Counted from the first letter of the stretch, positions 1 to 38,560 are shown. The stretch: 38,938 bases of DNA from Octopus bimaculoides (GCF_001194135.2 NC_068985.1:108276856-108315793), one strand, 5' to 3'. Notes: generated from the sequence alone by a model not told the origin. Made by a program: numbers and translations.

Positions 1-260
1 TAAACTGTCCTCCCCTCTTTTTACACGAGAACATTACTGTGTGATACACGATCCCTATTGATCGGCCTTTCCTTTTCTTTTTTTTTCGATCCCTTTTGAT
101 CGAACTGCCCCTTTTTCCCTTCCTACGATCCCTTTTGATCGACACCACCAATTTTTATTTTTTTATTTTTTTTTTCCTTCCTTCCCCCTCCCAAAAATAA
201 AAGCTCTACATTGTATTTGTCCCATCTTCGTTGAGCCCTGTGTGGCTAATAAAAGAAATG

Positions 261-296
<36 letters not shown>

Positions 297-308
297 CATC
301 TATCTATT
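1..308 (+). mobile_element. Probable 3' end of a non-LTR retroelement ending in a (TATC)n tail
   Basis: Repeated GATCCC..TTGATCG motifs, AATAAA-like signal (taataaaagaaa) directly followed by (tatc)n. Confidence 0.4.
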
Positions 309-327
309 TTTAATCGTTTTTTTTTTA

Positions 328-760
328 CATGCTTCAGTCGTTTGACCACGACCATACTGGGGTACCGGCTTGAAGTGGTTTAGTCGAAGAAATCTATACC
401 AGGAGTAGTACTTATTCTATCGGTCTCTTCTTCCGAGCTGCTAAATTAGAGGAATATCAACACACCAGCACTGGTTATCAAGCAGTGGTGAGGGAAAAAC
501 ACAGACACAAAGACACACATGCAAAGAAACACACACACACACGCACATACACACACACACAAACACGCGCGCACACACACACAGATACACACATGCGACG
601 GTCTTTCAATTTCTGTCTACTAAATCTACTCACAAAGCTTTGTTCGGTCCGAGCCTATAATAGATGACACTTGCCGAAATTTTCATGCTGTGAGACTGAA
701 TCTGGGACCACGTGGTTTGGAAGCGATCTTATTATTACACAGCCACGCCTATATATCTAC
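328..760 (-). mobile_element. tRNA-derived SINE (family A), degenerate
   Basis: Minus-strand head ggcgtggctgtg...ttcagtctcac...ggcaagtgtc, (CA)-rich middle; homologous to 3205-3660. Confidence 0.7.
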
Positions 761-927
761 ATTAATACATGTAATTATTTCCAACATATTAATATAAAAG
801 AAGGAATATTATAAGAAGGATGTTACCATCCTGTTTCAGCAATTTCTATGCAACCTATTTCAGGATCCGTGTACGTGTATTGACAATATCATTATCTATC
901 CATCCATCCATATATATATATATATAT

Positions 928-1482
928 GACGACCGCTCCATCTTGACAGACGATAGCCATCCCATCAACAATCCACACATATCATCACGCAGTACAATCA
1001 CTTCGTTGGTGAGCCCTCAAGTGACTTTGAAGTCCGGCTGCTGAGCGACAAGGTCTACAGCACAGATGACAAATGTTCAGGCCTCTCGATCCTTGCTCGC
1101 TGGTATCTGATTCTAAGGAAACGCCTCTGTGAACCAGCATATGTCTCTTAAGTCCGGGTATTGTTTTACATAACCTTGTGACATATGCCACAGGTCGCTC
1201 TTATGTCAGGTCGCTCTTATAAGTATTCCTGAGCGCTACTGGTAACATGTAATCCAGTACGACCTGTCTCATGGTCGGGTCGTCGGCGACTAAACTGGCA
1301 ACCCCACCAAGCTCGCTTGGTGAGGAGGGTGATTGTTGGCATCTTGCGGGATGAAAAATAAGACTCNNNNNNNNNNTGGTCGGGTCGTCGGCGACTAAAC
1401 TGGCAACCCCACCAAGCTCGCTTGGTGAGGAGGGTGATTGTTGGCATCTTGCGGGATGAAAAATAAGACTCGTCGAAAGGAC
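928..1482 (-). mobile_element. Internally deleted RTE-like LINE (5' UTR-like part joined to C-terminal zinc fingers and 3' UTR)
   Basis: Minus ORF 985-1191 has CHLCCRPCRSAAGLQSHLRAH, typical of RTE C-termini; flanked by (TA)n on both sides. Confidence 0.65.
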
Positions 1483-2351: not shown

Positions 2352-2456
2352 CTGCTTGTTTATCAGCCAAAAGAAGGATTTCAATTTGGTTTCTGCATTG
2401 AATATTATCAGTAAAACACAACTTTGACGAACAGTTTAATGGCTTTATTAGGATAA
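2352..2456 (-). CDS. Candidate ITIH exon, start of a divergent C-terminal domain ([V]ILIKPLNCSSKLCFTDNIQCRNQIEILLLADKQA)
   Basis: Very strong polypyrimidine acceptor ttttaccttctttctag, phase 1-1, donor G|gtacga; LCF...IL.L.D...G resembles the ITIH C-terminal pattern. The next exon is unresolved. Confidence 0.5.
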
Positions 2457-3826: not shown

Positions 3827-3892
3827 CAGGACTGCGGGGAAGAGGTGGTAATTCTCTTGCTGGAGCTGTGTTAGGAACTCTGTTTGAAGGTG
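3827..3892 (-). CDS. ITIH: ITIH Pro-rich linker exon, 66 nt, phase 1-1 ([A]PSNRVPNTAPARELPPLPRSP)
   Basis: attgttttag|CA...CCTG|gtaaga; GC-rich island in AT-rich DNA, open in phase 1. Confidence 0.85.
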
Positions 3893-4637
3893 CTAAAACA
3901 ATATAGTTCGATTTGAGTTTAAAGCAATATTATAACAATTTAAAGCTTATTCAATATGAAAAAAGAACGGAAAACTTTACTTTCGGATGAGACCATTTTT
4001 CGAATAGAGCATCCATTTAGATTTAACACTAAATTCCTGGACAAGGCATAATAGACATTGAAGTCATTTTGGGTGCCCAATGATGTTTCCTAGAAAAGAC
4101 ACATATCTACTCAAAATGAAATATCGTTGAAATTAGACTACACTGTTAATGCTAAAATATATTTCATCTGCCTCATAACAATAAATACAGTAGCCCTGCT
4201 TAAAATTATTTACTGCATGTTATGTAGCCCATCGTTATGCAGCGGTGTCTCTTGTTATGTGGTATTCCTGAGAAATGACATTTGAAGTGCATGTCATTTA
4301 AACTGTTACATAAGAAGCAAACTGTAAGAAAAGCTGTGAAAATATTACAAAATCATTATTGCTTATTTCTGTTCTATCTTCATATATTATAATACTTCCC
4401 CTAATGTAATATTTAAGATTTACATAATTTTTCAGGAATTGCATTAAGAGAATACATTTAAACAAATTACACAGGCCAACAATAATTCTTTTTCTCTGAT
4501 ATCAAAAACTTTGGAACCGAAATGAAAGTTTTTCACACAAAGGTCCAAAAATGAATATTCTATTCGCGAAAGGTAATGAAAAGTATGTTTAGCCGGAAAA
4601 AACAGTCAAATTAAAATTTTCTCAGCACATGGATCTC

Positions 4638-4678
<41 letters not shown>

Positions 4679-4693
4679 AAAGTATCTACATAC

Positions 4694-4708
4694 CCACTCT
4701 GTTAGGAT
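4694..4708 (-). CDS. ITIH: ITIH linker microexon, 15 nt, phase 1-1 ([H]PNRV)
   Basis: tttcatttcacttacag|ATCCTAACAGAGTGG|gtatgt; paralog of 9633-9647. Confidence 0.8.
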
Positions 4709-5371
4709 CTGTAAGTGAAATGAAAATTTCATATAGTTATGAAAATATCAAATATAAAAATATTTATGTTAACACATATCTAAAAAATAATGAATAGATT
4801 TATTACATAGTTTTGAAAATATATAATATTCAATATTTACATTAATCTCGGCAGTTAATAGAGTTATAATTTAATTGCAAAGAACAATTAAAAAGAAATT
4901 TTACTAAACGACCAGCTGTCTTACATGTTCATTGTAGTTGTTCTGCATTATTTAATTGGAGATAAAATAAGGTGGTAAATTTTGTCTACATATGTCAGCA
5001 TTTTCCCTTCCAATTGATTCCTCCACAACAAATAAAAGTTAATAGAATTTTAATTTACCTTAATAAAGTAAGAAACTACAGCTTACATATTGAAAAACAG
5101 TATTCATTTAGAGCTATATGAAAAACATAATATATCTGAACTTAATTACTATGATTATACTGGCAAAAACATAATGCCAATGTCTCTCGATTTATACAGC
5201 AATCTGTTTTCACAGATTCATTTTATTAGGATTTTGGTTTTGGTCTATATTGACAAAGATAACATTTCAACGTGTACGTTTGAATTTTTAAATAAGAAAT
5301 AAGAGGTTATGTTGTTACTTATGAAACAAATGTTATTTGCCAAACATGTATCTTTGAGTAATGCGATAATC

Positions 5372-5405
<34 letters not shown>

Positions 5406-5726
5406 NNNNNNNNNNNNNNNNNNNNNNNNNNNNNNNNNNNNNNNNNNNNNNNNNNNNNNNNNNNNNNNNNNNNNNNNNNNNNNNNNNNNNNNNNNNNNNN
5501 NNNNNNNNNNNNNNNNNNNNNNNNNNNNNNNNNNNNNNNNNNNNNNNNNNNNNNNNNNNNNNNNNNNNNNNNNNNNNNNNNNNNNNNNNNNNNNNNNNNN
5601 NNNNNNNNNNNNNNNNNNNNNNNNNNNNNNNNNNNNNNNNNNNNNNNNNNNNNNNNNNNNNNNNNNNNNNNNNNNNNNNNNNNNNNNNNNNNNNNNNNNN
5701 NNNNNNNNNNNNNNNNNNNNNNNNNN

Positions 5727-5758
<32 letters not shown>

Positions 5759-6663
5759 TGCTATTCATCTAAAGAATATACCATTTGCATTCTACAAAAA
5801 GTATTTGCAAAGTATTGAATAATCATTCAGTTTAATCAAAATTGTTTTAAATTATTCCTTGAAGATATATAATGTCACATTATATATTTGGTGATTATCC
5901 TAGTAAAGCTAATTTTCAAAATGCCTATCTATCCAAATTTCCTTGTTCCCCAACACCAACGAAAAGCATATGTAGTTGTCATATTAATTTATCTTAGATA
6001 ATGTCATTATAGAAACCACGGCACACATGCAGAACAACGGATAGCGCACAATAAACCTAAACTTATTTTCCGTGATCATTCTGACAACAGAGCAATGCAG
6101 TTGTCTCTTGGTTTACAAGTCAGTAGACTTGCATAATTTAATTTTAGTAGTGCCTTGGTTTCAATTGATTTTGAAATGTGATTTTACCTACACAGACACA
6201 TTTAGTCGTCAACGTTTCGTTTTATTCTTTCAATTTTTTTTCTACCTCTCAACTTTCGTTTCAGTTTATCAATAATGAGAAAGTCTACACGCTCAAATAA
6301 CAATCAACATTTTTTCCCTATACTTTGAGATTGAAAACTAGTTTGAAATGTTAAACCAGAACAGAAAGGAACGTATTTCTGGAAAGAAACATGAAAATAT
6401 TAAATCAACTTCGAAAGATAAAATAAAGGTTCGATAAAAATGGGTAAACTTCGGACTGTATGTCTGTTTTGAAAATTTATAATTATATTAAACACATAAT
6501 TGCTCCATTCACATGTTATTTAGACTTAAACCAGGAGTCCTTGAACCAATCTACTGTGTAAACCAAACGACCACTGCACGGTTATTTTTAGAAGGAAGTT
6601 GAATTTACGGGGGAAAATATGAGAGCTATGAACATTGGCTTTGTACAGAATATTGTTACTCAC

Positions 6664-6681
6664 GTTGCTGAAACAAATGAT
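6664..6681 (-). CDS. ITIH: ITIH linker microexon, 18 nt, phase 1-1 ([D]HLFQQ)
   Basis: ttctctttttcag|ATCATTTGTTTCAGCAAC|gtgagt; paralog of 10665-10682. Confidence 0.8.
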
Positions 6682-6984
6682 CTGAAAAAGAGAAAAAAAA
6701 ATTAAAGAAATATTGTAGAATTTATTACATCCTGTTATAGAAAACATACTAGACTTCCCAGCGCGAGTGATATTTTACATAACTAAAACCATAGAGATTG
6801 ATAGTCGGGCGTAATGTTAGTTGCCCAGAGAGGGCAGTCAAATTAACACAGGCATACTCCTATATACACATGCACGCGCGCATCAGAACATGAGAGACTC
6901 TGATATTACATATGAAAGAATTCTTGTTTGCCAAACTCATATTTGTGAATATTGAGAGAAATTATATGTTTAATATAAATTCAT

Positions 6985-7131
6985 AAGTATTCTTTTCTAC
7001 TCTAGGCACAAGGCAACTGGTACTTAATTTATCAACCCCGAAAGAATAAAAGGCAAAGTCGAACTCGGTGGAATTTGAACTCAGAGCGTAAAGACATGAA
7101 ATATCGCTAAATTCTGCCAGCCTGCCGCCAT
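6985..7131 (-). mobile_element. tRNA-derived SINE (family B), internally deleted
   Basis: Reverse complement of the 7424-7638 copy (gagttcaaattcc, gactttgcc, gataaattaagtaccagttg, ccttgtgcctagagtagaaaagaa). Confidence 0.8.
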
Positions 7132-7423
7132 ATAAATGTATAAATATTACGTTGATAAATGACTGAAAGCGCTCAAGGAATTTGTCATACTTTTAAACAT
7201 TTTCAGAAAATTCTTGCGAATTTGTATTCTACATGTAAGAATTAATACGATTATGCAAAAAAAAACAAAACTAAACAAAACAGAACAAAAACGTCTTTGA
7301 GGCGTAATTTAAGAGCTACTCAACTGTCATTTTTTGTACATCTCACGACCACCTCATACATTCCTCGTTTATTTGACTGTCAGACGTATTTGTGTTTTTC
7401 AATATTTTTCGCCCCACATGAGA

Positions 7424-7638
7424 TGGCGAGCTGGCGGAAACGTTAGCACGTCGGGCGAAATGCTTAGCGATATTTCGTCTGTCTTTACGTTTTGAGTTCA
7501 AATTCCGTCGAGGTCGACTTTGCCTTTCATCTTTTCGGGGTCGATAAATTAAGTACCAGTTGCGTACTGGAGATCGATCTAACCGATTGGCTCCCTCCCC
7601 CAAATTTTGGTCCTTGTGCCTAGAGTAGAAAAGAACAT
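7424..7638 (+). mobile_element. tRNA-derived SINE (family B)
   Basis: Head gagctggcggaaacgttagc...gagttcaaattcc (A/B-box-like); homologous pieces at 6985-7131 and 11590-11628. Confidence 0.8.
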
Positions 7639-8239
7639 CTTTCACCCCATAAACATATTTAAAGATCTTTTAGAGGGATTTAAGTAAAAAAAATTGGGAC
7701 TGTCCGTATATTAAACTGTGATTCTAAAAAAAAATTTCTAAAAATTACAAAAAAGTTTTCCATAGTCGTGTGAATTCCCGCATGTAGGAAAAAAGTTCGC
7801 AAAAGTTTTCCAAAAATTCTAAACAATAAAAAAGTTATGAGTGGTTATATGGCATGTTTAAAGCAGTATTCCGCCAATTAAAGTACCCCAAGGTTACGGC
7901 GAGATCCTTAAATATAGAATATGTGTAGTGGTTATTCTTTCCTTTTCACCCACTTTTCCTGGTAACTTCCCTTCACTCTTTCTGTCGCTTTTCCTAAATA
8001 ACTCGAGTCTTGCGGATAAAACCACTACCGGCAGCCACCTTGCATTCTGTGCAATCTATTATGAAAATTACTTTGCTCTGCGTCGGATTATTATTTAGAA
8101 TTTGGATATGAATCTGAAAATTATATAAAATTTATACAGATGTTATAATTTATATGAAAGTATTAGCATTAAATATCTATTATTTATCTATATTATCTTA
8201 AAGAAAATTATTTTATGTTTTGCTTCCTCATATAGTGTG

Positions 8240-8607
8240 GAGGCGTAATGGCCCAATGGTTAGGGCAGCGGACTCGCGGTGATAGGATCGCGGTTTCGAT
8301 TCTCAGACCAGGCGTTGTGAGTGTTTATTGAGCGAAAACACCGAAAGCTCCACGTGGCTCCAGCAGGGGGTGGTGGCGAACCCTGCTGTACTCTTCCACC
8401 ACAACTTTCTCTTACTTCCTGTTTCTGTTGTGCCTGTAATTCAAAGGACCAGCCGTGTCACGCTGAATATCCCCGAGAACTACGTTAAGGGTGCACGTGT
8501 CTGTGGAGTTCTCAGCCACTTGCACGTTAACTTCACGAGCAGGTTGTTCCGTTGATCGGATCAACTGGAACCATCGTCGTCGTAAGCGACGGAGTAACAA
8601 CAACAAC
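8240..8607 (+). mobile_element. tRNA-derived SINE (family C) with (AAC)n tail
   Basis: A box tggcccaatgg, B box ggtttcgattct, GC-rich body, ends gtaacaacaacaac. Confidence 0.8.
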
Positions 8608-8977
8608 CTCATATAGTATATGCTCTCGTAAGAGTTTTCGGTTGCATAATTGAGTTCGTAACAATTGTTAGAATATAAATATGTACTTAACGAAAGTAGT
8701 ATATTTGACAAGTCATTCGTGATACAGCTATTACAATGTAAATCGAATTTGATTTATTTCCGAGGTGGGGGGGCATACAAAACAAAAACAAACTCCACGT
8801 TATCAACATTATACCAGTATGGATAATATTGCTCATTTTAAATCTAGATAAAATTGAAATGGAGAAAACATTACGAAAACACCTAATACAACGTAATTTT
8901 AATGTTTAAGGGATTTTAATGAAGTTGTCAGCTGTCTTTCACATAAACAAAAAATCCCAGATCTTAGTTCAATGCTG

Positions 8978-9538
8978 GGATCTTTTTTAAAACGGGGGCC
9001 ACATTTTTCATTAATGTTTTACGTAGTGTTTTTGGTACCGAAAGACTTTCAAACTTCGTATACTTATCTATTTTGTGTTATAGAACAGAAAAATATTTTT
9101 GTATTCGAATTTATTTCATGTAAAAAATTGTGTTATTTCGATAATTTCAACCAATCACTGATGTCCATTCAGCCGATATACATTAAGTGCCGACTACATA
9201 AACAAACGATTCTTCGTTTTATTTGCTTTTTTCATTTTAAATTTGCTTTAACCCTAACCTTAACCCTAACCCTAACCTTAGGGTTAGGGTTAGGGTTAAT
9301 TGTTTCAGAATCGTTTGTTTATGTAGTCGGCACTTAATGTATATCGGCTGAATGGACGTCAGTGATTGGTTGAAATTACAGAAATACGACAACTTTAACA
9401 TGGAATAATTTATGGATTTCTCTTTTTTTTAAAGAAGACTAAGAGAAAAAGATGTTTTATATGACACATTCTACCAGTGTTCCAAGTTTCAAAGTGTTTC
9501 GTTAATGAAAAATGTGGCCCCCGTTTTAAAAAAGATCC
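8978..9538. mobile_element. Fold-back MITE with a telomere-repeat centre and 8-bp TSD
   Basis: TIR ggatcttttttaaaacgggggccacatttttcattaa at both ends, caatgctg at 8970-8977 and 9539-9546, arms complementary around a (CCCTAA)n/(TTAGGG)n switch near 9280. Confidence 0.9.
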
Positions 9539-9632
9539 CAATGCTGTTTAAATGAGAGTGCATCTTGCTAAGGTTGGTTAGGATTAATTTATCATACGCA
9601 TACAGAAAATCTACGTAAAAATATCTACATAC

Positions 9633-9647
9633 CCAATACGGTAGTAC
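9633..9647 (-). CDS. ITIH: ITIH linker microexon, 15 nt, phase 1-1 ([R]TTVL)
   Basis: ttctattactgttacag|GTACTACCGTATTGG|gtatgt; paralog with the same sites at 4694-4708. Confidence 0.78.
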
Positions 9648-10664
9648 CTGTAACAGTAATAGAAAATTAATTTAGTTATGGAAATATCAGATTTGTAAAT
9701 ATTTATGTTAATATATATCTAAAAAGAAAGGAATAGATTTATTACATAATTTTCAAAGTATACAATATTCTATATTTATGTTAAAGTAGTAAATAATAGT
9801 TGTAATATAGCTCTATAGAATTATGGAAAAGTTAATTTATTCAAGCGGTCAGCTGTCTTTCATATTTATTATAGATGTTCTACACTATATATTTGTGGAG
9901 ACGCATATTTTAGTGTTTAGAGTTTTAGACTCATGATCGTAAGATTGTGGTTTTGATTACTGGACCGGGCGACGCGTTATATTCTTCAAAACAATTTGTC
10001 TGTTGTTGTCATATTAATCTGCCTTAGATAATGGCTATTATAATGCAGAACAGCAGATTACAATAAGCCTAAACATATTTTTCATTATTGTTCTAACTAT
10101 AGTGTAATGTAGTTGTCTTTCGGTTTACATGTCAGTAAGTTTCATTTTAGTAGTGTTTTGGTTTCAGTCAATTTTTGAAATGTTGTTTTATGCATATAGA
10201 CACAACATTAAGCCGTTAATGTTTTGTTTGTCTTGTAATTGTTCTTCCGTCTCTCTTTCATTTCATTTTATCCGAAACATAGTCTAACTTGAAACCCTCA
10301 TGTTAGAATTTTTTCCTATACTTCTTTAACTATTTTAGAGATTGAAGACTAGAATTTTAAACTTTAAATAAAAAGAGAAAGGAACGTATTTCATGAAATA
10401 AAAATGAAAATATTAAATCATCTTCAAAAGAAGAAAAAGATTCGGTAAAAGACTGAATGTCTTTTTTAAAAAAAATTGATAAGAATACTGAAAGCATATA
10501 TTACTCCATTCTCCCGTTATTTATACTTAAACGGTGAGTCATGAAACTTGTTTACTGTGTAAACCCAAAGACAATTATACATTTATTTTTAGGAGGTTGT
10601 TTAATTTTCGGTTGAAATTATGAGTGCTATGAATCTTGGCGCTGTGTAGAATATTGTTACTTAC

Positions 10665-10682
10665 GTGGGTCAGAGAAATGTG
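10665..10682 (-). CDS. ITIH: ITIH linker microexon, 18 nt, phase 1-1 ([P]HFSDP)
   Basis: ctctctctttcag|CACATTTCTCTGACCCAC|gtaagt; splice sites and length conserved in the paralog at 6664-6681. Confidence 0.82.
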
Positions 10683-10757
10683 CTGAAAGAGAGAGAGAGA
10701 GAAAAAAGATATATTTTAGAATTTATTACACCTTCCTATGGAAAACAAAAGCAAAAC

Positions 10758-11586
10758 GGATCTTTTCCTTTTGATCGGCAGGTCGATAAATTAATTTTTT
10801 TTAACTAAACACTTTCAAACTTCGGATACTGGTAGAATGTGTCATATAGAACATCTTTACTCTTAGCGTTGTTGAGAAAACTTTCTATTTACGAAGCTAT
10901 TTCGTGTTAAAGTTGTCGTATTTCGGTAATTTCAACCAATCAATGACGACGTGTTCAGCTGAATAAAATTACTGCTGTTGTATGTTAACAACAACTTCCG
11001 GCGGTGTATATTTCGTTTGTCACTGTTATTTATGACATATTTCATCTCAGTTACGTTCGTATGAATAAACGAGTGTATCTGAAGCACGTTTACTTCACGA
11101 CACCATCATAATCGTCCGAGCATTTCTACTGCTTTTAGGTTTTNNNNNNNNNNNNNNNNNNNNNNNNNNNNNNNNNNNNNNNNNNNNNNNNNNNNNNNNN
11201 NNNNNNNNNNNNNNNNNNNNNNNNNNNNNNNNNNNNNNNNNNNNNNNNNNNNNNNNNNNNNNNNNNNNNNNNNNNNNNNNNNNNNNNNNNNNNNNNNNNN
11301 NNNNNNNNNNNNNNNNNNNNNNNNNNNNNNNNNNNNNNNNNNNNNNNNNNNNNNATTCTAGAAAATTGCCAAAAATTAAAATTTTGAAATTTTTGCCCCT
11401 CCCCTTCCCCCTTCCCCAATTTCATTATTTTTCCTTTTTTCCGTAACCCTAACCCTAAAACCCCAACCCTAACCCTAAAACCCTAACCCTAACCCTAACC
11501 CTAACCCTAACCCTAACCCTAAAACCCAACCGTAACCCTAAACCCAATCCTAACCCTAAAAATCTAACCCTAACCCTAAAACCCTA
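10758..11586. mobile_element. Related GGATC-starting MITE-like element with an interstitial (CCCTAA)n array, interrupted by a gap
   Basis: Starts ggatctttt, shares aaacactttcaaactt..actggtagaatgtgtc and ttcaaccaatca with 8978-9538; degenerate CCCTAA array at about 11445-11586. Confidence 0.6.
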
Positions 11587-12076
11587 AAGCTAAAGACAGA
11601 CGAAATACCGCTAAGCATTTCGCTCGACAACACCACCATCGGCAGTCGCCTTGAATTCTGTGTGATCTGTGATAAGAATTACTCTCTTTTGGATGAAATT
11701 ATTACCTTCTGTTACACAATGGAGTTTGTAACACTTGTTCAAATACACATATGTCCTTAACGAAAGTAATACATTTGACAAGTTAATTATAATGTAGCTA
11801 CAGCAATCTAAAAAAAAAAAGAATTGATTTATCCCCTCCCCACCGCCCCAAAGTGTGCATGTTACCAATATCATACTATTATGAATAAAATAGCTAATTT
11901 TAAATCTGGGTAAAATTGCAATAGAGGAAACATTATCAAAAACACTCAATAGAATGTAATTTTCATGGTTAAGGGATTCAATACCTATTTTAATACTATG
12001 CATTTTTCAGTGTTCATAAAAATTTTGATGCTATATATATAGATAGAAGTAAAAATAACGAAGCATTTCTACTCAC

Positions 12077-12100
12077 GGATATTCGGGGCGTAATATCCAA
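12077..12100 (-). CDS. ITIH: ITIH linker microexon, 24 nt, phase 1-1 ([F]GYYAPNI)
   Basis: atttcattttacag|TTGGATATTACGCCCCGAATATCC|gtgagt. Confidence 0.78.
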
Positions 12101-12214
12101 CTGTAAAATGAAATATAAAAAAAATGTAACTTAATGTTGATAAAACAGGTTTTTCGCTGATAAAAGTATATATTAACATAAATGAACACTGTATAGTTCC
12201 TAGTTAAAAGTGTC

Positions 12215-14010
12215 GTCTATTACCTTTTGATGTGCATGTTCATACCTCGTATCTATACATCCGGCATAACAGCCAGTGAAGGTTTGGGACCAACTTATCG
12301 TGTCTGCGCAAGACTTTCACAAGCACTAACAATGTGAGTCACGCTCTCGACCCCCTCTCCACACATTGTGCAGAGGTTCGTTTTACTTGCGTGGTATATA
12401 TCCCTTTTTACTGACTTGGCATTCAATGCCTGGTCCTGGGCAGCAATGATTAGGCTTTTAGTCTTCTTTTTTTAGGTCTCCCTTGCTGAGCCACCTCCAT
12501 GGATGCTTCTGGGTCTTTTAATTTGGTAGCTTAACAGTGGAACTGACTATGTAATTCCATGCAGAGTAGGATTTCTTCTCTCTCGTTGGCTATTCGTAAT
12601 TGGAATTCATAAGCACTCTCAAGTCCAATTTTGGTAAATCCTTCTGCATTAGCAGCATACTGTAGGTCTTGTTCGTTGTTTACCAAATATTCTGCTATGT
12701 TTCTCCATTCACTGTTGATGCACTCCGATACGCTAATCAGCCCACGTCCAGCTTTACACCTCTTCATGTAAAGCCTATGTACGTTCGCCTTAGGGTGGAG
12801 GACACCATGTATTGTCATTGTCTTTCGGGGAGTGCGATCGAATTGGTTAATCTCCGCTTGTGTCAGTTTCAGGATTGGTGCTCTATAGTGGACCATAGCA
12901 GCAGCCCATATGTTGATGGCCGTCACAAGGTTCCTGGAGCTTAGTTTTAATTGCAAGAGAAGTTTGAGATCTTGTTTTTCATTTCTTTATGCAGGATATT
13001 GCCTAGCTCCAGGATCCCAAGGTACTTGTACTCATCATCGTCCGGATCTTCCTTTCTGTCTCCGTTTGGCAATTCTTTGCCTCTACAATCTGCGCTTTTC
13101 TCCCGTTTCAAAGTGAGCACCGCACATTTCGAGATACGAATTCCATCCCTATATACTTGCTGCCCATCTGTACAGTCTCAACCAGCCTCTCCACTTCAGA
13201 CTGTTTTTGCGAACAGTTTCAAAACATCCATGAAGAGAAGTGGTTGAGACGAGGACCGTTCTTTCTCAGCTCATAGTGCACGTTAATTTTACGTAGGACA
13301 AAAGAAAGTGGGATCAAGGCTGTAACAAATAGCAAAGGTGAACGAGAGTCTCATTGAAAGATACTTCTTTTGATTGTTACCTCGGCTAAATGCTATTTGT
13401 TACAGAAAAGACGTGTTTTCAAACTAGCCATGATGTTCTTAATCAGTGCACACACGTTTTCAGCTATTCCACACATGTCAAGTGTTTCCCAAATTCACGA
13501 ATGCGGCAACTTGTCGTAAGCATTTTAAAATTCTATCCAGGCCATGCACAAGTATTTTTGGTATCGTTTGTAGTTCTTTATTACAAAAGGTCACTTGTGC
13601 CCTTGGTTCTTTTACAGCATCCCTTTTGTTCTATTGGAAGTAGATTGTTTTCCGCAAGGAACGTATATATTTTCCCTGTGAGGATACCTGTTAACACTTT
13701 CTATAAAAGGTTAAGACAGGCAATGGGTCAGTAGTTGCCAGTCTCATTGCCCTTTGTCCGATCTTTCATCAACAATGTTGTCTTCCCCTTTAGAATCCGC
13801 TCTGCCTAATTGCACCACTCTATCTAATAGCAACGGAGTTCGCTTGTGTGTTTACCTAAACCACTCGAGTCAGTAGCCATGAATTCCTCTGGTCCTGCCG
13901 CTTTTCATTTTGGCAGTTTAAAATAAGTTGCATTTATACACTGGAGTTAGTTGGATTTCCTATACCACTTCCCTAACAAAACTGGTCTTGTGCTTCATGG
14001 CCATTACAAC
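12215..14010 (-). mobile_element. Degenerate RLE-type non-LTR retrotransposon (R4/Dong-like), RT to CCHC region
   Basis: Frameshifted motifs KAAGP, KGKTTLLMKD, PIACLNLL, EQKGC, FMDVLKLFAK, YKYLGILE, LHPKANVHRLY..R..GRGL, ESVTHIVSAC. Confidence 0.9.
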
Positions 14011-14198
14011 GCAAAATAACAAGCAAGCAAATATCCTAGCTACAAATGCAATGCAAAATAAGTCGTCAGTTTTATGAATGACTTGAAGTGGTTTTTGAAA
14101 GAGATCATATAGTATAGCTATTTCAATCCAAATTTTAATATACAAATCCAAATTTTAATATGCATATATAATAACAGTCCAAATTTTAATATACTTAC

Positions 14199-14225
14199 AT
14201 GGACGTAGAGATGGTAAAGATTTTT
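14199..14225 (-). CDS. ITIH: ITIH linker microexon, 27 nt, phase 1-1 ([E]KSLPSLRP)
   Basis: tttcttttccattgtag|AAAAATCTTTACCATCTCTACGTCCAT|gtaagt; open, frame-preserving. Confidence 0.75.
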
Positions 14226-16571
14226 CTACAATGGAAAAGAAATACATTGAAAATTGTAATAACGGTCTCGAAGTAACATTTTTAGTATAACATAGTAGAA
14301 TATAACGAAACTGTGCCAGCAGAGGTATCAATTTTAGAGAAAACTTTATAATTTTTTTTTAACAATTTCCTAAATATAACAATTTTTCCTTATTTAGGGT
14401 ATAATGTATGATACATACTAAGACAGTAATTAGACTGAAAATGTTTGCTAGATCATTCTAAAATACAATCAATGTAGTATTATATATATATTGTCAAAAT
14501 AAATTCTGTAATTAGTTATTGCTATATTGCATAGCACGTACAATTTAATTACATATATAGCAGGAATATTTAGTAATCGAACCCAGATCACAATATCCCT
14601 TGCAAAAAAAAAACAAAAAAAACTGCAACTCAAGTATGCGATTGCAATGCGCTAGAACATTCTTACGTCATCAAAATTTCTGATCATTCATGATTTTGTA
14701 TCAAACCAGATGTGACATCAATTATATCTTTGGGGTGTTTTTTCTGAGCAGTATATATTCAACGTTATATTCAGCGCATTTTGGTCACTACCGAGAGACG
14801 GTGGATGGCAGACATCAGAAGACGGCAGTCAGAGGACAGAAGCAGAAACAGCAGACAGTTAGAGTGTTGTCACAATACAAAAACAATGGACGTGGGCAAC
14901 AGCAACAGTGATAAAATAACATCAAGGAACTATCCACAGCAACGACCAAGATCAATAACCTTCGATCTATCTCAGTGTTTGACGTACGTGGTAATAGCAA
15001 TATCGTTTTGTTTACGATAGAAGTAAATATTTTTCTGTCAAAATCTCGAACTCAATTCGGTGTTCTTTATCGTAACGTATGTGAACATCAACATATGTGA
15101 CCATGAACATATGTGACCAAATTACATTTTCAGCCCAGAAAAAGTTTCATTAAGTAAAGAATACAAAGCGCTCAGAAGGAAAAATAAGAGAAGAATAAAG
15201 AAATTGTGAAATTACAATTTGTTTTATTCCAGTACCGTTAAGTTGCTTATCTCTCAGTCGTTTCTGTTGATGTTTAATATGATGAACACAGACTTAGTGA
15301 GATAGATCACTGAGGTGTGGACGGAGTCGTTATGTGTTGTTGAGAAAAAGATTACCCATATTACAATGCCTAACAGTACAAATGCTACTGACCGAGCATC
15401 AGCTCTAGTAGAGGTTGTGATGATATACCAGTTGGGGAAAATTAGGTAGCTAGAATAAGAGAAGTAAGCAGAATATGTGAAATAAATATATGAAATGCTT
15501 TGGCCCGCCCAGAAACTTCAGCAATTATTTAAACGTATTGCAAGATCTTGTGTTTATGGTGTCTAAAGCCATCGTAATATTGGAAAACTTTTTTCTTCCA
15601 CCAGCAAATATTCCAGGGTCTGAAGCATTTCACTTTTTTGCCTGCACATTTCGCCTGTGTGGGACAACAAAGACTCGATTAGCCTTTGCCTGCAGCCTGT
15701 TGTCAACCCAAATCCTTTGAGCTTGTTTAAGCTGCCATACTTGTCTATTTGGTGGCTTTCATTAATTGTGATCTGTGATCTCTGCTTATGACTTATAACT
15801 AGATTTCATAGATGAACTAGAGTAACTATGGTAAGATAGATCTTTGAGTGTTACTTTAAGTATAAAGCTTTAAGTATAAAGGCAATATACCGTGTTTATA
15901 TATGAGCAAATGAAATTAGATGAAACTTACTAAAATAACTTTAAATTGTTGTTTTCAAACTATTCAGTCAGAAAATAATTCTATGATTATAATGTAATTT
16001 TCTAACGATTATATACAAATGAATTTATGTTTTTTATGTTTCTAAATCTAAATCTGGAAAATTTCGTTTTATCTTTTGCATTTATTACTAATTTTAAAAG
16101 CTTAAAAGCAGAATATTAAATAAACCATCAATCATATCACATGAAATTTTCATTGTGTTTCAAGAATTAATAGGCGCATTAAACCCCCCCACCAAAAAAA
16201 AAACATTGTTTTCCAAGAAAGTTTCTTAAATTCATTACATTTTATCCATAATTTCTACAGGTTATATTAGTTTTCCTGATTTAAGCGAAAATACTATGAA
16301 ACGAAATCTAGTATATTTGAGCTAAATTTTTTAGATTAATCATTGCGGAGTTGAACGTTTGATACCTAGTACTTATCGCATGGCAATCATGGATACATTT
16401 AGATAATGATAACATATAGTTTTAGATTTTATGATATAAACAATCATAAAAAAATCTTTTGTTATGATTGATTGGTTGAAAGACGTATATGGTAAAGTCA
16501 TCTCAGTTTAATTATTTCGTTATCATGACCTCAGGAGCTTGTCATTAAAGTGGTATGAATGATAAAATTAC

Positions 16572-16644
16572 CTTCTTCAAACAGTTCTTCATTCACTTTG
16601 TATTTAGTGACAACCATTGATGTTAATGGAGTTACGAAATTATA
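16572..16644 (-). CDS. ITIH: ITIH exon 8 (YNFVTPLTSMVVTKYKVNEELFEE)
   Basis: Family hallmark FVTPLTSMVVT; tcacag|TAT acceptor, G|gtaatt phase-1 donor. Confidence 0.96.
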
Positions 16645-21352: not shown

Positions 21353-22807
21353 CTGTTTGAAAAACAAACAACAAATATTTTAACTTATATCTATAGCAGA
21401 TTTGCTATACCTGTTATTTCAATAACACCAAACCTGATGAGATATAACTTAAATGGTTTGATGGACTTGATTAGCTGCGAATCATTGTGATATTAACTGT
21501 GTGATAATGTAACGTGAACAGCGGCAAAATTAGATAGCGTTTACCTTGGGTGGGTAATATTATGTCAGTGCAGGACATTTTAACAATAAGTTTAGTCAGT
21601 CTGTAATAAAGGACTGCGTAACATTTGATGATCAGCTAGTGCATGATTTTTTACGACGATCTAGTAAGAAAATCTAGCGGGAGAAGTAAATAGCAAAAGG
21701 TCTTCAGAAAACAAGCAACTTTTCTTACGGAAGTGTTTCAGTTCTTAACTTCTTAAGTCTTAAGGAACAGACGCGCATTCAGGACATCTCTCTGCTACCC
21801 CTATTTTGCTACTCTTTGCATTGTAATTAGCACTTCCTTGCGTGTTTGAGATTCCTCAGAGCCAAGAATTGCTTGAATGTCGTAGTAGCTCGTTTTGAGA
21901 CACCAGTGAACATAGGGTAAATTATGCCTTCGGAAATTCCTTTTTATTCCTCCTAAATTGCTAAGGTATATAGTGAGGAATTATTATGCTTACTATGGGA
22001 ATGTGAACAATTAAGTTTGAAATTTACCATAACAAACTGTAACGTTTATCGCGGGAAATACTTACTGTAGCACAGTGTAATTCTGGTTGTTGAAGGCGGC
22101 ATTGTCACAAGAGTAGGGATTTGGACATTATATTGTTGGCCTGAAGATGATTTAATGTTACAGAAGAGAAAAAAAATGTTACCCCAATGACGTTATGATG
22201 TTAAAGTGTAAACGAAATGAAATTTGTACGATTCCGAAGTGTATTATTTATTCTAAGTGAAGTGTTTTCTTTACACAAGAATAAAGATCATTTTGTAGAC
22301 AATTTATTGATAAGTGTAGTTCTATAGTACTTACTATGAGTAATAATGAGAAAATTGGCCTCATCTTTGATATAACTTGTCATCTGAATATCATACTTTT
22401 CTGTTACCTTGAGCAATGCAGTTGAATGGTTATCAATTCTAATCCTTCGACAATATGCCAAATATCTTCTTTTTTCCTACATGTGATTAATTATAACATG
22501 TTGTACATGTATAGAACTTGATATACTGGAAGTGAATATTATTATTGAATGTGGTTTTCTTATATTTCACTTACATCTACTTCTATTGAATTTTATAACA
22601 CCTGCTCAAAGAAATGTTTATATTCACTCCAGTACAAAAATTAATATTCACTACAGAAACCTTATTTTCATTATCAAGAATACTATTTTCTGTATTTTTG
22701 ACATGCGGCCAATCTGTGAAGCTTATAAAAACAGTGGTTAAATGACGTTCGTGACGATAATGTCTGATAAAAATATAGAGAAAAACAAACATAAGTGATT
22801 TACTTGC

Positions 22808-30425: not shown

Positions 30426-30679
30426 TATACATACACGAAAGAACACTTAGATATATGAAACGTATATACAATATTCTTGTGATTTTGTTATAAATCTGAG
30501 TAAGTTACATAGTGGAGTGACGGAACTCAAACAGGATCTGCCTAGTCTAAATTCAGGAACATAGGCGGTTATTGGATAAAATGCCTCAAGGATAGATTTC
30601 TCAAATGAAACCAATGGGATTGGACAAATTGCGCTGTAGAGAAACGTCTCAAATTATGTTTTAGAAACTGTGTTAAACG

Positions 30680-30680
<1 letters not shown>

Positions 30681-30745
<65 letters not shown>

Positions 30746-30869
30746 TAAAGGCACGTCCTCTCACGCTCACACATACATATATATATACACAAACACACAT
30801 ATATATACAAATATGTATATATATATACACATAGATACATATATATACACACATGTATGTATATACATG

Positions 30870-30942
<73 letters not shown>

Positions 30943-31027
30943 NNNNNNNNNNCATACATACACACATACATACATACATGCATACATACATACATACATA
31001 CATACATACATACATACATACATACAT
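30681..31027. repeat. Compound (CA)/(TA)/(CATA) microsatellite with a 10-N gap
   Basis: Direct sequence. Confidence 0.95.
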
Positions 31028-31029
31028 AA

Positions 31030-31839
31030 CAGGGTGCGGTGAATAAACTGTCGTCTAAATTACGCAAAAATGAAAATGATACTAACATCTCATTTTAACA
31101 CATATATTTTCTAAAATTATATAAAAATATCTTGAAATACTAAAGAGTAAATTTATTAAATGAAATCACCATTAGCTTGCACAGTCTCCTTGTTTAAGTT
31201 GGTGAATGCTGTCATAATCCTAGTCTTCAGTTCATCTTTGATGTTAAAAGGTGTTTTGTTGGTCTCCCGCTCAACTGCACCCCACACATAATCAAAGGCT
31301 TTGCATTCTGGGGAGTTAGATGGTCAGATGTTAGGGGTGATGTGGTTGCAGAAATTGTCTGACTGACACGAATGGGTTCTCCTGCTTTGCTTGTGTGGCA
31401 TGGTACAGAGTCCTATTGCCAGACATAGGGTCTTCCAGCAGCCACCCTCTTGACCCAGGGCAGCACTACCTCCTCCAGGCACTTGATGTAGGCCTACGCG
31501 TTGAGTCTGAGGCCGTGTGGGAGGATGAACGGAGGCACAACGTTGCCATCACTAGTGATCACTCCAAACACCATGAATTTAACTGGATGTTTGATTTTTA
31601 GCACTCCCGGTACATGTTCGTATTGGTACATGTTTGTATTGGAGCTTCCAGCGCGAATGCCAAGCAGTACAACATCGCTTTTCAAAATTTCTGTCAGACG
31701 GAATTGCATCATGGTGCTGTGTTTCTCACAGACGGTGCCCAACTGAATCTACTATTCTGTGTAGTCGACAAAATCAAAAACAACCATGCCCAAGCGCGAT
31801 ATTAGAAATATAAAATGGTGACAATTTACCCACCGTACC

Positions 31840-32988: not shown

Positions 32989-33005
32989 TAGGAAATTATG
33001 TGTAG

Positions 33006-34910
33006 ATGGAGAATTCTACGAGGTATAGTACAGTGCAAAATACCAAAAAGGAACCTACAAGTTATAAAACCTACAAGAGAAAACCGACCACTACCTCCTT
33101 GGATGCAAAAAATAAACGAAAGAAATCTAGAAAACGAAGCGCATCGAAAGAGGAAAGGGATGTAGCAGACATGGAAAATTTCTTAACATAAGAATATGAA
33201 ACTTCTGGAAGGCATATAAGTGCGAAAAATATGTCGAAACACATTCGAAATGGATTTCTTTAGCGGCACCCATACTTCCTTGGAAGTATCTTATTAAAGA
33301 AATTGTAGGAGAACCAGAGGAGGAAACAAAACTTCGATGGGAGCTTACTTCAACAAAACTCAGGACCAACATCTCTATTACCCTTTGTAAACAATCCTGT
33401 TATAGAGCCAGATATGAAGCTGTCGAGTGGAGACGAAATAACAAAAGTAATGGCTGGCAGAAATAGCAGAAAAATGCGTGAATAATGGATCAAAGATATC
33501 TCAAAACAAGAAAGCAGATCAAGAAAGTTATGGCAGCAGAAACAATTATTTCTCGCCAAATATGCCACAAATTACGGTAAAGACTCTAGAACGCTGAGAA
33601 ATAGCATTAAAAGTGAACAATCTCACCAACTAACATACGCCAGAACACGTGGCAACACGAACACTAGTTTTACCATGAATTGAAGATGAACTGCGGTAAG
33701 AACTCTTCCCTTTTTGTACGCAAGCACTCTGATGTATACAATACGAACAAAAAGCATAAACAAGATAGATATTCCTTTGATCAGACCATTAGGAGTAGAA
33801 ATAGCAGGTGATCGTTTTCAAAACCTCAACAGAGATTACCTTCTAGGAACTGGGCATATAATTGATCTAGATCTGGAAGCAAACCTAGATCATTTCCTCA
33901 AGTTGTTAAAAACAAAACTAACAAGAAATTGAAAAATAATATTCTTAAATACCAAAACAGGACAGAAAAGATAACGAAACCAAGTAAAATACCACAACCA
34001 AAACGCATTGTCCATCAGGCAAACATCAACAAGAACATAAATCATAAACAGAGAAAATTCCATTTTTAACGTCAGGACAACAAACACCAGAGAAAGAAAA
34101 AATTCAAAAGGAAACATACCCAAAACAACAGAACGTATAGATCCTAAAATAATTAATTTATCTAAAAGAGATCTTGACAATGATGAAATCCAACTTCTGT
34201 CAAAAGAACTGAAATTCACACCTACACCAACAGTCAACTACCAAGAACTAAAGGAGGATATCCGAATATTCTATCGTAAGTTACAACTTGTAGAATTCTT
34301 CACTAATAAAAGTAATGAGATTGATAAAATTAATGAGAATAAATCAAATTTCAACCCACCAAAAGAAGAAATAAGTGTCTTGACCAATACTTTGGTATCT
34401 TGTCTAAATTTCCCTTTAGAAGATCAACAACCTAGTTTCAAAACACTACGACTCACCGATAAGGAGACTACATAAATTTCGAGTCAAAAATACATAATTC
34501 AAAAGATATTCAACATGCTATAAAAGACCAAGAAAGTGAGTACATAAAATTACTACACCCAAGAAACTTAAAACTTACACCTATTATAGCTGGTCCATCA
34601 TGCCCTACCCACCGTCTAAGCAATTTTATTGACATTGTTTTGAAACCACTATGTACCTACATACTCAGTTTCATCCGGGATGATATCAACTTCCTGTCCC
34701 ATCTTCCCAAAACAAGAGAAACGAATTCACTTTTACTTAGTTTTGATATGGTAAGCCTTTGCACCAATATTCCACATGATTTAGGAATAAAGGCGATTAA
34801 ATACTGTGTAGAAAAACAGAGAGAAGTGATTCCCAACAGATTCACAGTGCCATTTATATTAGACACAGTCAGTCTTATTCTGGAAAACAACACATTTTTT
34901 TCAATGGAAA
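33006..34910 (+). mobile_element. Penelope-like retroelement, degenerate N-terminus and RT part
   Basis: IINLSKRDLDNDEIQLLSKELKFTPT, PIIAGPSCPTHRLSNFID, SFDMVSLCTNIP, LILENNTF are PLE RT motifs; frameshifted and 3' truncated. Confidence 0.88.
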
Positions 34911-35051
34911 GAATTACATCTAAATTAAAGTATATCTTTCGCACACACATACCTGCGTGCTTTTAGAAGTAGCGAAACATTGCAGCGTTACAGAAAATAC
35001 AAAGTTAGTAAAAGTCACTCACCCACTATATTTCAGTGCATATACATACAT

Positions 35052-35108
<57 letters not shown>

Positions 35109-35157
35109 AACACTATTTCCAAATCTCTCAAAGAGAGATATTCAGTANNNNNNNNNN

Positions 35158-35205
<48 letters not shown>

Positions 35206-35214
35206 AGTGTGTAC

Positions 35215-35246
<32 letters not shown>

Positions 35247-36739
35247 ATGTATGTATAAATGTTACATATTAACTACACTACCCGTGACCCATTGGATTAC
35301 CGTTAAACTCTGAGTTTCCCAGCAACAGAATTTTGTTTCATGGGTTGGAAAAATTTGGCTGCTATTTCTTGCACACCCTGCAACCACGTAACAGGTATTT
35401 CTGGACCTTTATCGCAAATAGCTGTTACATGGTAGCAGCGCATGCTAGAAATAGCAGCCAAATCTTTGGAGGGGTGATAGATTGAATGCACTCGATAAAA
35501 ACTATTTCACACTGAGGTTACGAACGGACTTTTACGAAATATCTACCGTCATAAGTTACTGTGTCATTTTCACTTTTAGAATATTTTTTAAATATGCAAT
35601 TAAACATTTTTTGTAATTTAAAAAAAAAACATTAGAATATTGTCTGTTTAAAGAAAACTAAAATATACACACTTACTGTACAAACAGCTTACATTTTCAA
35701 AATCACATTCACTTTAAAATATTTGCAAATGATAAAAATATTGTTTAACAAAAGCGAAAATAGAAATTGTAAAAAAAAAAACATAGTTTTTTTTTGTCGT
35801 TGTTAACTCACTGTCTAATAGAAAGATAAGAGTTTCTTCCCTTTCAGAATGAAGATTATTTTCGGAACATTTTCCCATCATGCACTGTTTAAAGCATTTA
35901 TGCTCTGAAAATCTCTAATATCTTGAAAACTACTTTACCGATTTACGCGAAACTTGCTTCATTCGATTCGTATTAACATTTCAGGGTAAACTTAATTCAC
36001 GGTATTTTTCAGTTTCACAAGTTTCGCTGAGTAAAATTACAAGTAAGCCAGCAAGCAAGATTGAAACTGACTTTTAATGTATTATAAATAAAAAGTAAAA
36101 GGTAGTCAGAATTTGGATAAATGCTAATTATTGGCGCTTTAAGCCCCTTCAGAGACTCGTCACTATCACTGGCGGGGCCTTGGAATTTTTCCTTTTTATA
36201 TAAATCTGAATGAGTTGAAAAAAGGTCAAGTGTTCAATTTGCATTCTTGAGTTTGGTAAAATGAAATTTGGGTTTGGTTATTTGCAATGTTTTTTGTCAT
36301 TTTGAATCTATATGTGTGTGCACGTAAGTGTGCCAGTTGTATTTTTAAACGAAGCAAATAAAGGAGTGTTACCTGGAACGGTTAATGTTTTGACAGGTCA
36401 AAAAGATCAAGCATTTATCAATTGCAATCCATTTTATTCTTATTTTTTATTTTATCTTCATTTTCGACGCAAGCCTCCAAAAATCTTACATTAAAATTCA
36501 CAGCACACATACATACAAACCTATAGAGAGTCAAAATCTGTGTTTCATAGTCTAACAACAACTTTTGTTGTTTTAGGTGTCATGTCTAGGTCCCTTATAA
36601 GATTTTAATCCAGTCAACAATTTGCTGACAAGCCCTCAGATTGGACCTAAAAGAAGATTATTATACAAAGCATTTGTTATGTTAGTCCAAGATATTTTCT
36701 TTGCATTCAGTTCTCTAAGATAATTCTGACAGCTTATTC

Positions 36740-37720: not shown

Positions 37721-38299
37721 CTCCTATTTGTAAATGTTCTATAATGTATACAGCCTTGATTTTTTTTTTATCTCATTACGAAAAGTAAATCCTTATGTTT
37801 ACACGGTGATATATGACCTACGTTGGACCCCTTATTCGCATAATCACCGAACCTGGAGTTTAACTATGGTCTATCCATAGCACTTACTCAGCATTACCTG
37901 AAACCTCTGGGTGTAATTGACACCACTATCGCTCATAACCTTTATGTATATGTATGTATGTGTGTGTGTATTTATATACATATATATATATAAATATATG
38001 TATGCGTATATATATATATATATATATATAATAATAATAAAGGAGTTACGACGCAAAAACGTATAAATTCAAAAGAACATATTTATCTTCTTCAATATAT
38101 ATTTCAGTATAAAGAATTCATTAAGATGCTTAAATCAAAATCTCATTACACATCATTCAGGAACAGATATAACATCAGAAAAAATACATTCCGTTTAAAA
38201 ACACAAACCGTTCATGGCGAAAACATTTCACAATTACAAAAAACGAACAAAATTTTTAAAGTTTTAGCAAAAAGAACGCTATTACCTACATACAGGCAT

Positions 38300-38471
38300 C
38301 CGCGTGTGCGCCCGTACACACACGCACACACGTTCATACGCGCATACACATTCATGCACGCACACACGTGCACTCTCACATGTATATATATGGATATACA
38401 AAGAAGCAAAGATCACAAGTCATAAACACATACACACACACACACATACATACACACATACACACATACAT

Positions 38472-38560
<89 letters not shown>

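Follow-up and report, generated by a model that had tools for sequence, protein, structure and literature searches.

The stretch of DNA analysed here (the window; 38,938 nucleotides of Octopus bimaculoides, to which all window positions refer) is a gap-bounded contig of chromosome CM046605.1 (GCA_001194135.2, ~108.26-108.32 Mb), with which it is identical, and it carries on its minus strand a gene for an ITIH4-like protein in which the linker between two domains is encoded by an array of microexons. A model built by hand from splice sites and open frames gives a 701-residue N-terminal protein, and exact spliced mapping of XP_014784808.1 (P0199; ITIH4 isoform X1, 834 aa) to the genome matches that model exon for exon. 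The gene has 18 coding exons, with exons 17-18 outside the window, and a coding sequence of ~2505 nt, of which the six microexons contribute 117 nt. Together with a 66-nt exon, these microexons are coding exons 9-15. All introns, starting with the one after exon 8 and finishing with the one after exon 17, are in phase 1, each exon after exon 8 through the 105-nt exon 16 is of phase 1-1, and all seven exons from 9 to 15 have a pyrimidine tract, a YAG acceptor, and a GTRAGT, GTATGT or GTAAGA donor. The features of the linker region, in the order of transcription, are as follows:

16572-16644, minus strand: exon 8, 73 nt, phase 0 to 1, encoding YNFVTPLTSMVVTKYKVNEELFEE; the final conserved exon ahead of the linker, aligned with human ITIH4 to residue 606
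14199-14225, minus strand: microexon 9, 27 nt, phase 1-1, EKSLPSLRP; in every annotated isoform
12077-12100, minus strand: microexon 10, 24 nt, phase 1-1, FGYYAPNI; in every annotated isoform, with no counterpart at the homologous site of an O. vulgaris paralog
10665-10682, minus strand: microexon 11 (18a), 18 nt, phase 1-1, PHFSDP; cassette exon that both XP_014784810.1 and XP_014784812.1 skip
9633-9647, minus strand: microexon 12 (15a), 15 nt, phase 1-1, RTTVL; in every annotated isoform
6664-6681, minus strand: microexon 13 (18b), 18 nt, phase 1-1, DHLFQQ; second copy of 18a, which XP_014784811.1 skips
4694-4708, minus strand: microexon 14 (15b), 15 nt, phase 1-1, HPNRV; second copy of 15a, which XP_014784809.1, XP_014784812.1 and XP_014784811.1 skip
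3827-3892, minus strand: exon 15, 66 nt, phase 1-1, APSNRVPNTAPARELPPLPRSP; closes the linker with a Pro-rich segment, in every annotated isoform
2352-2456, minus strand: exon 16, 105 nt, phase 1-1, VILIKPLNCSSKLCFTD...; opens the C-terminal domain and is homologous to a 117-nt exon of alpaca ITIH4 and a 114-nt exon of Lingula

A first-pass annotation of the same DNA had proposed the seven linker exons, and their sizes, phases and positions are confirmed base for base, as is its placement of the end of exon 8 in phase 1; the linker peptide it gave is the same as the translation of the exons and identical to that of XP_014784808.1. Judged from the RefSeq models and from the same architecture in paralogs, the seven exons are genuine. 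Neither they nor their isoforms are new, as RefSeq already lists them.

The chance occurrence of such exons was gauged by scanning for pairs of splice sites in which a GTRAGT or GTATGT donor lies 9-30 nt downstream of a pyrimidine-rich YAG acceptor, a criterion fixed after the sites had been seen but strikingly specific. Within the 12.7 kb that separate exon 8 from the 66-nt exon, the scan returned six minus-strand candidates, which are exactly the six microexons, all multiples of 3 in length and open in phase 1. The plus strand gave one candidate, and third-order Markov simulations gave 0.9 candidates in total and 0.2 that were in frame and open, with a maximum of 2. Widening the scan to 6-60 nt added just two candidates (14419-14457 and 6750-6782), both with phase-1 stops. 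All 128 of the 128 combinations of inclusion and skipping are free of stops and encode distinct peptides, which bears out the earlier claim that no skipping combination interrupts the frame. The reported lack of a UGC motif just upstream of the acceptors also stands, TGC being absent within 60 nt upstream of all six.

Five full-length RefSeq sequences fall within the 90%-identity cluster of the window protein, and each was assigned by matching it to all 128 synthetic exon combinations:

XP_014784808.1 (X1), 834 aa: no exon skipped
XP_014784809.1, 829 aa: 15b skipped
XP_014784810.1, 828 aa: 18a skipped
XP_014784812.1, 823 aa: 18a and 15b skipped
XP_014784811.1, 823 aa: 18b and 15b skipped (EukProt source only)

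Because the four further sequences match exon-skipped combinations, in-frame skipping of the linker is already annotated. Exons 18a and 15b are skipped independently, skipping removes 5-11 residues in frame, and the 27-nt, 24-nt, 15a and 66-nt exons are constitutive across the annotated isoforms. The Gnomon pipeline of NCBI requires transcript or RNA-seq support for alternative variants, and real alternative splicing of the linker is considered highly likely. Of the splice-modular cassette that the first-pass annotation described, the symmetric phase-1 exons and their in-frame skipping hold, but the library of 64-128 variants is not yet supported; these numbers are stop-free arithmetic and an upper bound rather than an observation, since just three of the six microexons (18a, 18b and 15b) are ever skipped in annotated isoforms. 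The UniProt model A0A0L8G3A3 of 2015 terminates through read-through of the exon-8 donor. It thus fits the early ending that the annotation had named as evidence against the exons, yet it is an older computational model rather than a transcript.

Self-comparison of the window revealed three collinear duplicated blocks in the linker introns:

11707-11978, minus strand: block A, which follows closely after the 24-nt exon; its copy at 8637-8915 is 70.5% identical
10001-10747, minus strand: block B, with 18a; its copy at 5971-6746, with 18b, is 70.6% identical
9618-9895, minus strand: block C, with 15a; its copy at 4679-4958, with 15b, is 75.5% identical

Since these blocks are collinear and carry 18a/15a and 18b/15b, respectively, the pair of 18-nt and 15-nt exons arose by tandem duplication of an intronic unit of ~5 kb; a second copy of the 24-nt exon was not found beside the second block A (8637-8915). 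Acceptor tract, donor and frame are kept in both copies after ~25-30% divergence. The exon bodies are identical at 11/18 positions for 18a/18b and 9/15 for 15a/15b, and the identity of the 30-nt flanks is 67-80%. This anatomy of the microexon linker and its origin by duplication are close to certain. Exon 15b (4694-4708; ATCCTAACAGAGTGG, PNRV) also resembles the 5′ end of the 66-nt exon (3875-3892; CACCTTCAAACAGAGTTCC, PSNRV), a likeness that hints that the start of the larger linker exon may be able to spawn microexons.

The region also contains two assembly gaps:

5406-5726, no strand: assembly gap within the intron between 18b and 15b, with (TA)n on either side
11144-11354, no strand: assembly gap within the intron between the 24-nt exon and 18a

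The identical two gaps occur in the chromosome-level assembly, and because neither touches an exon, the continuity of the frame is independent of them. The first gap sits in ~1 kb of extra sequence that is missing from the other duplicated copy, and the splice scan found no candidate exon in the second unit's counterpart of the interval gapped at 11144-11354. As to the earlier idea that the gaps hide more exons, both are intronic, and on the DNA alone they may hold further alternative exons, but the comparison of the duplicated units suggests that none is missing.

The linker belongs to a protein that starts with a signal peptide, followed by VIT and VWA domains, the latter with its metal-ion-dependent adhesion site (MIDAS) intact, and then by the linker itself and a beta-rich C-terminal domain. 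The N-terminus is hydrophobic (MAPRLLFVIFSTAFYLGITA), the VIT domain (Pfam PF08487) spans residues 30-141 (E=9e-25), and the VWA domain (PF00092) spans residues 276-451 (E=3e-18), with a canonical MIDAS (DxSxS...T...D) whose residues D281, S283, S285, T352 and D382 are invariant in an alignment of 34 homologues. Human ITIH4 (PDB 9c4f) matches octopus residues 29-606 with E=1.6e-86, ITIH1 (6fpy) matches with E=1.6e-68, and the octopus exon reading 'LCF...LLLAD', from residue 653, gives a weak local match to human ITIH4 719-775. The linker covers approximately residues 606-666, with the microexon-encoded part at approximately 606-644. It is the sole poorly conserved part of the protein and is not alignable between paralogs, its Pro content is 18% compared with 17.3% in the human ITIH4 region, and AlphaFold2 gives a predicted local distance difference test (pLDDT) score below 50 and no secondary structure at residues 598-656, in a model that is confident elsewhere (mean pLDDT 79). 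The DPHF(I/L) consensus is absent from all cephalopod sequences examined, the octopus protein reading ...PRSPVILIKPL, whereas DPHF is kept in the bivalve and brachiopod relatives Mytilus and Lingula (GDPHFML and NDPHFLI).

In human ITIH4, residues 633-713 form a protease-susceptible region that serves as bait and is highly variable between species (Pihl et al. 2021, PMC7793589). Cleavage in this region by MASP-1, MASP-2 or kallikrein triggers formation of a MIDAS-dependent, non-covalent inhibitory complex, and the DPHF-type consensus is missing from ITIH4 too (PMC7793589). Because the alignment with human ITIH4 stops at octopus residue 606 and resumes weakly at octopus 653 and human 719, the microexon-encoded residues occupy the position of human 633-713. 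Both premises from which the first-pass annotation argued hold, namely that the ITIH4 region at this position acts as bait (PMC7793589) and that alternatively spliced bait regions occur in invertebrate thioester proteins (PMC7016707).

The phase 1-1 linker is older than the octopods. The FVTPLTSM exon of alpaca ITIH4 has its end in phase 1; next come four linker exons (27, 138, 66 and 27 nt) and an exon of 117 nt ('...VILPLPGQSENRLC...'), all phase 1-1. ITIH of the brachiopod Lingula has the same phase skeleton around linker exons of 90 and 237 nt, and its isoform X2 skips the 237-nt exon. Because the exon arrangement from FVTPLTSM to 'LCF' is common to octopus, alpaca ITIH4 and brachiopod ITIH3, the phase 1-1 design of the linker is an ancestral feature of ITIH genes, and octopods did not invent the symmetric linker, since alpaca and Lingula hold the same skeleton. 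Judging from these gene structures, what octopods did is fragment and multiply an old linker into microexons. The skeleton is accordingly older than the split between protostomes and deuterostomes.

The window gene lies within a tandem cluster of ITIH4-like paralogs, with at least four O. bimaculoides paralogs on this chromosome. Another VIT-VWA gene (1050 aa product; L003 58214-58499) begins 9.7 kb downstream of its stop, and paralog 2 (XP_052823894-6; L004, CM046605.1:108.381-108.428 Mb) lies ~64 kb away. The linker of paralog 2 consists of ten microexons (27, 15, 30, 15, 15, 15, 18, 30, 18 and 18 nt) and an 84-nt exon, all phase 1-1, including three nearly identical 15-nt exons spaced 200-300 nt apart, and its isoforms skip one 18-nt or one 30-nt exon. 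The comparison of linker exons among cephalopod ITIH paralogs that the earlier annotation had called for thus shows that other loci carry arrays of their own, in which both the number and the sequence of the microexons vary. Contig L002, which is ITIH-like but more distant, contains tandem units of 1.2-1.5 kb, 82-95% identical, and every unit includes one phase-1 microexon (24-39 nt) whose splice flanks are nearly the same from unit to unit. One repeat unit of this contig (16266-17024) is without the segment that bears the microexon in its sister units, which looks like exon loss through a small deletion in an otherwise conserved unit. In RNA-assembly-derived proteins of another ITIH-like gene, apparently from a cephalopod, variation falls almost wholly in the linker (an insert of 16 residues and a poly-Thr tract that varies in length), with two single-residue changes outside it.

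A locus of O. vulgaris (L001, product P0001; 67% identity to query exons 7-8 and the linker) was considered as the ortholog of the window gene and rejected, as it is the ortholog of O. bimaculoides paralog 3 (XP_052824064.1); comparisons of the window with this locus are for that reason paralogous. Its linker exons measure 21, 15, 15 and 90 nt, and the second 15-nt exon is missing from the O. sinensis and O. bimaculoides models of the paralog-3 gene. Positions 39100-39160 of this locus have flanks similar to those of the 24-nt exon site at window 12070-12110, but the 24 nt and both splice sites are absent, which indicates, on this alignment, that the 24-nt exon was gained or lost between paralogs. 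The P0001 model, a 'hypothetical predicted protein' of 552 aa, lacks counterparts of window exons 5 and 6, with which the VWA domain starts, although similar DNA is present at L001 27365-27803 and 29988-30461, and it finishes with an odd 50-nt terminal exon; it is probably incomplete. The probable ortholog of the window gene in O. sinensis (P0080, 1136 aa) is a fused model that extends over 240 kb; its VIT regions are duplicated, and its linker, in which VPEAEF repeats abound, is very different. An ink-proteome paper on O. vulgaris lists ITIH-like peptides, which suggests that ITIH-like proteins reach secretions.

Several further observations concern the remainder of the window. Large assembly gaps border it on both sides in the chromosome record. 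Coding exon 4 is followed by a GC donor (AAAG/gcaagt; window 22802-22807, minus strand) that the RefSeq model also uses, and the corresponding site reads gtaggt in O. bimaculoides paralog 2 (L004) and O. vulgaris L001. An inverted repeat resembling a miniature inverted-repeat transposable element lies in the microexon introns at window 9124-9396 and 11430-11600, with 90-nt arms, 93% complementary, and a telomere-like (TTAGGG/CCCTAA)n core; a second CCCTAA-rich tract adjoins the 11144-11354 gap, and related arms occur at 10795-10948. Fragments of a tRNA-like short interspersed nuclear element are found at window 8240-8600, 7400-7640 and 7010-7110, with many copies in O. vulgaris L001 too, and ARAGORN called no tRNA in them. 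Long stop-free stretches at window 12300-13900, 31150-31810 and 33000-34970, intronic and upstream of the gene, look like decayed open reading frames of transposons or retroelements, and Pfam scans of the intronic open reading frames gave nothing significant. Microsatellites of (TG/CA)n, (GTAT)n and (TA)n are abundant, and together with four 10-N gaps they occur at window 1-1376, 30650-31050, 35000-35260 and 37900-38938.

Taken as a whole, the locus is probably explained as encoding a microexon-built inter-domain linker of a secreted ITIH4-like protein that is likely to be accessible to proteases. The linker would be an exposed, disordered and fast-evolving hinge, most likely a protease-accessible region like the protease-susceptible region of human ITIH4, and duplication, loss and skipping of its exons would tune both its length and its content of cleavage sites. 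Its Pro content and predicted disorder, the invariant MIDAS, and the missing DPHF fit a candidate cleavage-activated inhibitor of the ITIH4 type. A function as protease bait, which positional homology, composition, predicted disorder and the conserved MIDAS residues would favor, is nevertheless put forward tentatively, as a possibility short of the expected outcome. Rarer odds still attach to a wider proposal, according to which the ancestral linker of ITIH would have become, in cephalopods, an evolvable bait that is modular through splicing, with a tandem cluster of ITIH4-like genes, each having an array of duplicating phase-1 microexons, and with regulated inclusion setting which proteases, of the animal itself or of its pathogens, cleave the linker and are then trapped via the VWA MIDAS; this proposal is speculative and rather unlikely.

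Several findings weigh against this interpretation. Skipping affects just half of the microexons, the isoform that lacks 18b and 15b (XP_014784811.1) comes from EukProt alone, and the isoforms as a group are Gnomon predictions whose combinations may be partly assembled by the pipeline; no transcript-assembly (Logan) member was found in the 90%-identity cluster of the window protein. Pfam ITI_HC_C (PF06668) was not detected at E<=1 in the four cephalopod proteins scanned. Several cephalopod paralogs have mucin-like linkers rich in Thr, a composition that suits a generic disordered spacer no less than a bait. The duplicated exons are identical at 20/33 positions and their flanking introns (±30 nt) at 88/120, so that the exons are no more conserved than their surroundings, a divergence that fits relaxed constraint as well as diversifying selection in a sample too small to separate the two. 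In a rival reading, the linker would be no more than a flexible tether joining two folded parts, O-glycosylated in some paralogs; its microexons would drift in number and sequence since nearly any disordered sequence would serve, and the occasional skipping of such short exons would be tolerated error that remains visible as symmetric exons escape nonsense-mediated decay. Such a neutral spacer would account for poor conservation confined to the linker, for duplicated exons that diverge at least as fast as the flanking intron, for the poly-Thr or Pro-Thr-Ser-like linkers of some paralogs, and for skipping limited to the duplicated exons 18a, 18b and 15b. It accounts less readily for the retention of splice signals in both copies at ~25-30% divergence or for the strict multiple-of-3 length and open frame in every array across paralogs and species. 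Independent annotations of linker-exon skipping, moreover, exist for paralog 2, for Lingula and for the transcript assemblies of the apparently cephalopod ITIH-like gene, and the position is homologous to a demonstrated functional region of ITIH4. A neutral spacer with splicing noise is a serious competitor, if on balance a doubtful one.

The other explanations carry far less weight. The domain order is as in ITIH1-3, in which a DPHF(I/L) cleavage site follows the linker, processing cuts off the C-terminal part, and an ester bond joins the Asp at the new C-terminus to bikunin's chondroitin sulfate. The retention of DPHF in bivalve and brachiopod relatives would also speak for such processing here; however, with no DPHF in octopus or any cephalopod sequence examined, the protein resembles ITIH4, and processing of the ITIH1-3 type is very improbable. 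Still slighter is the chance that the array is an artefact of annotation or assembly, either through a gene predictor joining chance AG...GT pairs or through true exons lost in gaps. The isoforms are computational (XP_) models, the 2015 model stops within the exon-8 read-through, and the region contains two gaps, yet six candidates were found against 0.2 expected, both gaps are intronic, paralogs, other species and transcript assemblies have the same architecture, and alpaca and Lingula share the exon phases. A neural microexon programme of the SRRM4/eMIC type acting on the window gene is equally hard to credit. Lengths of 15-27 nt are within its range of exon sizes, but UGC is absent from the 60 nt upstream of all six acceptors, the product is a secreted VIT-VWA protein, and the exons are tandem duplicates in a hypervariable linker rather than in a deeply conserved, structured surface loop.

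Full-text literature searches combining microexon with cephalopod and ITIH with microexon found no description of this architecture. What is new here is the recognition of a family-wide, duplication-driven microexon array in the ITIH linker, along with its possible functional meaning. Whatever its function, the locus shows cleanly how intronic units, once duplicated in tandem, give rise to new symmetric microexons in a disordered linker. If linker variants differ in protease susceptibility, the octopus ITIH-like genes would provide a second, independent case of splice-diversified bait regions, next to that of thioester proteins and alpha-2-macroglobulins, and would extend the recently discovered inhibitory mechanism of ITIH4 beyond vertebrates. 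The wider proposal of a regulated bait, if true, would amount to a mechanism of innate-immune diversity parallel to bait splicing in thioester proteins and alpha-2-macroglobulins, on an unrelated scaffold.

Among known systems, the protease-susceptible region of vertebrate ITIH4 shares with the octopus linker its place between the FVTPLTSMVV segment and a 'LC...LL.D' C-terminal exon, a similar Pro content, strong variation between species, the absence of DPHF and a conserved MIDAS, and in alpaca the linker exons are likewise symmetric and phase 1-1, the first being a 27-nt microexon. Unlike vertebrate ITIH4, the octopus genes have six to ten far smaller exons (15-30 nt) derived from recent tandem duplication, the linker sequence is not alignable, and the C-terminal domain has no Pfam ITI_HC_C match; cleavage and inhibition are known in ITIH4 and hypothetical in the octopus protein. 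The X1/X2 isoforms of Lingula anatina ITIH3 are similar in their 719-nt exon (phase 1 to 0), 106-nt FVTP exon (phase 0 to 1), linker exons of phase 1-1 and 114-nt exon of phase 1-1, and in the skipping of a linker cassette exon in one isoform, but this gene has two large linker exons (90 and 237 nt) in place of a microexon array and retains DPHF and Pfam ITI_HC_C.

Outside the family, the micro-exon genes of Schistosoma similarly encode secreted proteins through runs of symmetric, multiple-of-3 microexons with long introns, in which skipping generates variants. The coding sequence of those genes is mostly microexons and the products are small, parasite-specific proteins, whereas the octopus array is 117 of ~2500 nt in a large, conserved multidomain protein, and the two have no homology. 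Alternatively spliced bait regions are found in Drosophila TEP2, Chlamys farreri TEP, and Biomphalaria A2M, TEP2 and CD109 (PMC7016707). These thioester proteins and alpha-2-macroglobulins resemble the octopus protein as secreted, immune-type proteins with an exposed hypervariable segment that is diversified by alternative exons (PMC7016707); the segment is protease-sensitive in them and may be so in octopus. They differ in having an unrelated fold and mostly mutually exclusive, full-size exons, compared with additive microexon skipping in octopus, and their bait function is experimentally supported, whereas the octopus linker is a candidate bait. Neither A2M nor thioester domains were found in the octopus protein, in which Pfam detects VIT and VWA only, and the likeness is therefore one of analogy, not membership.

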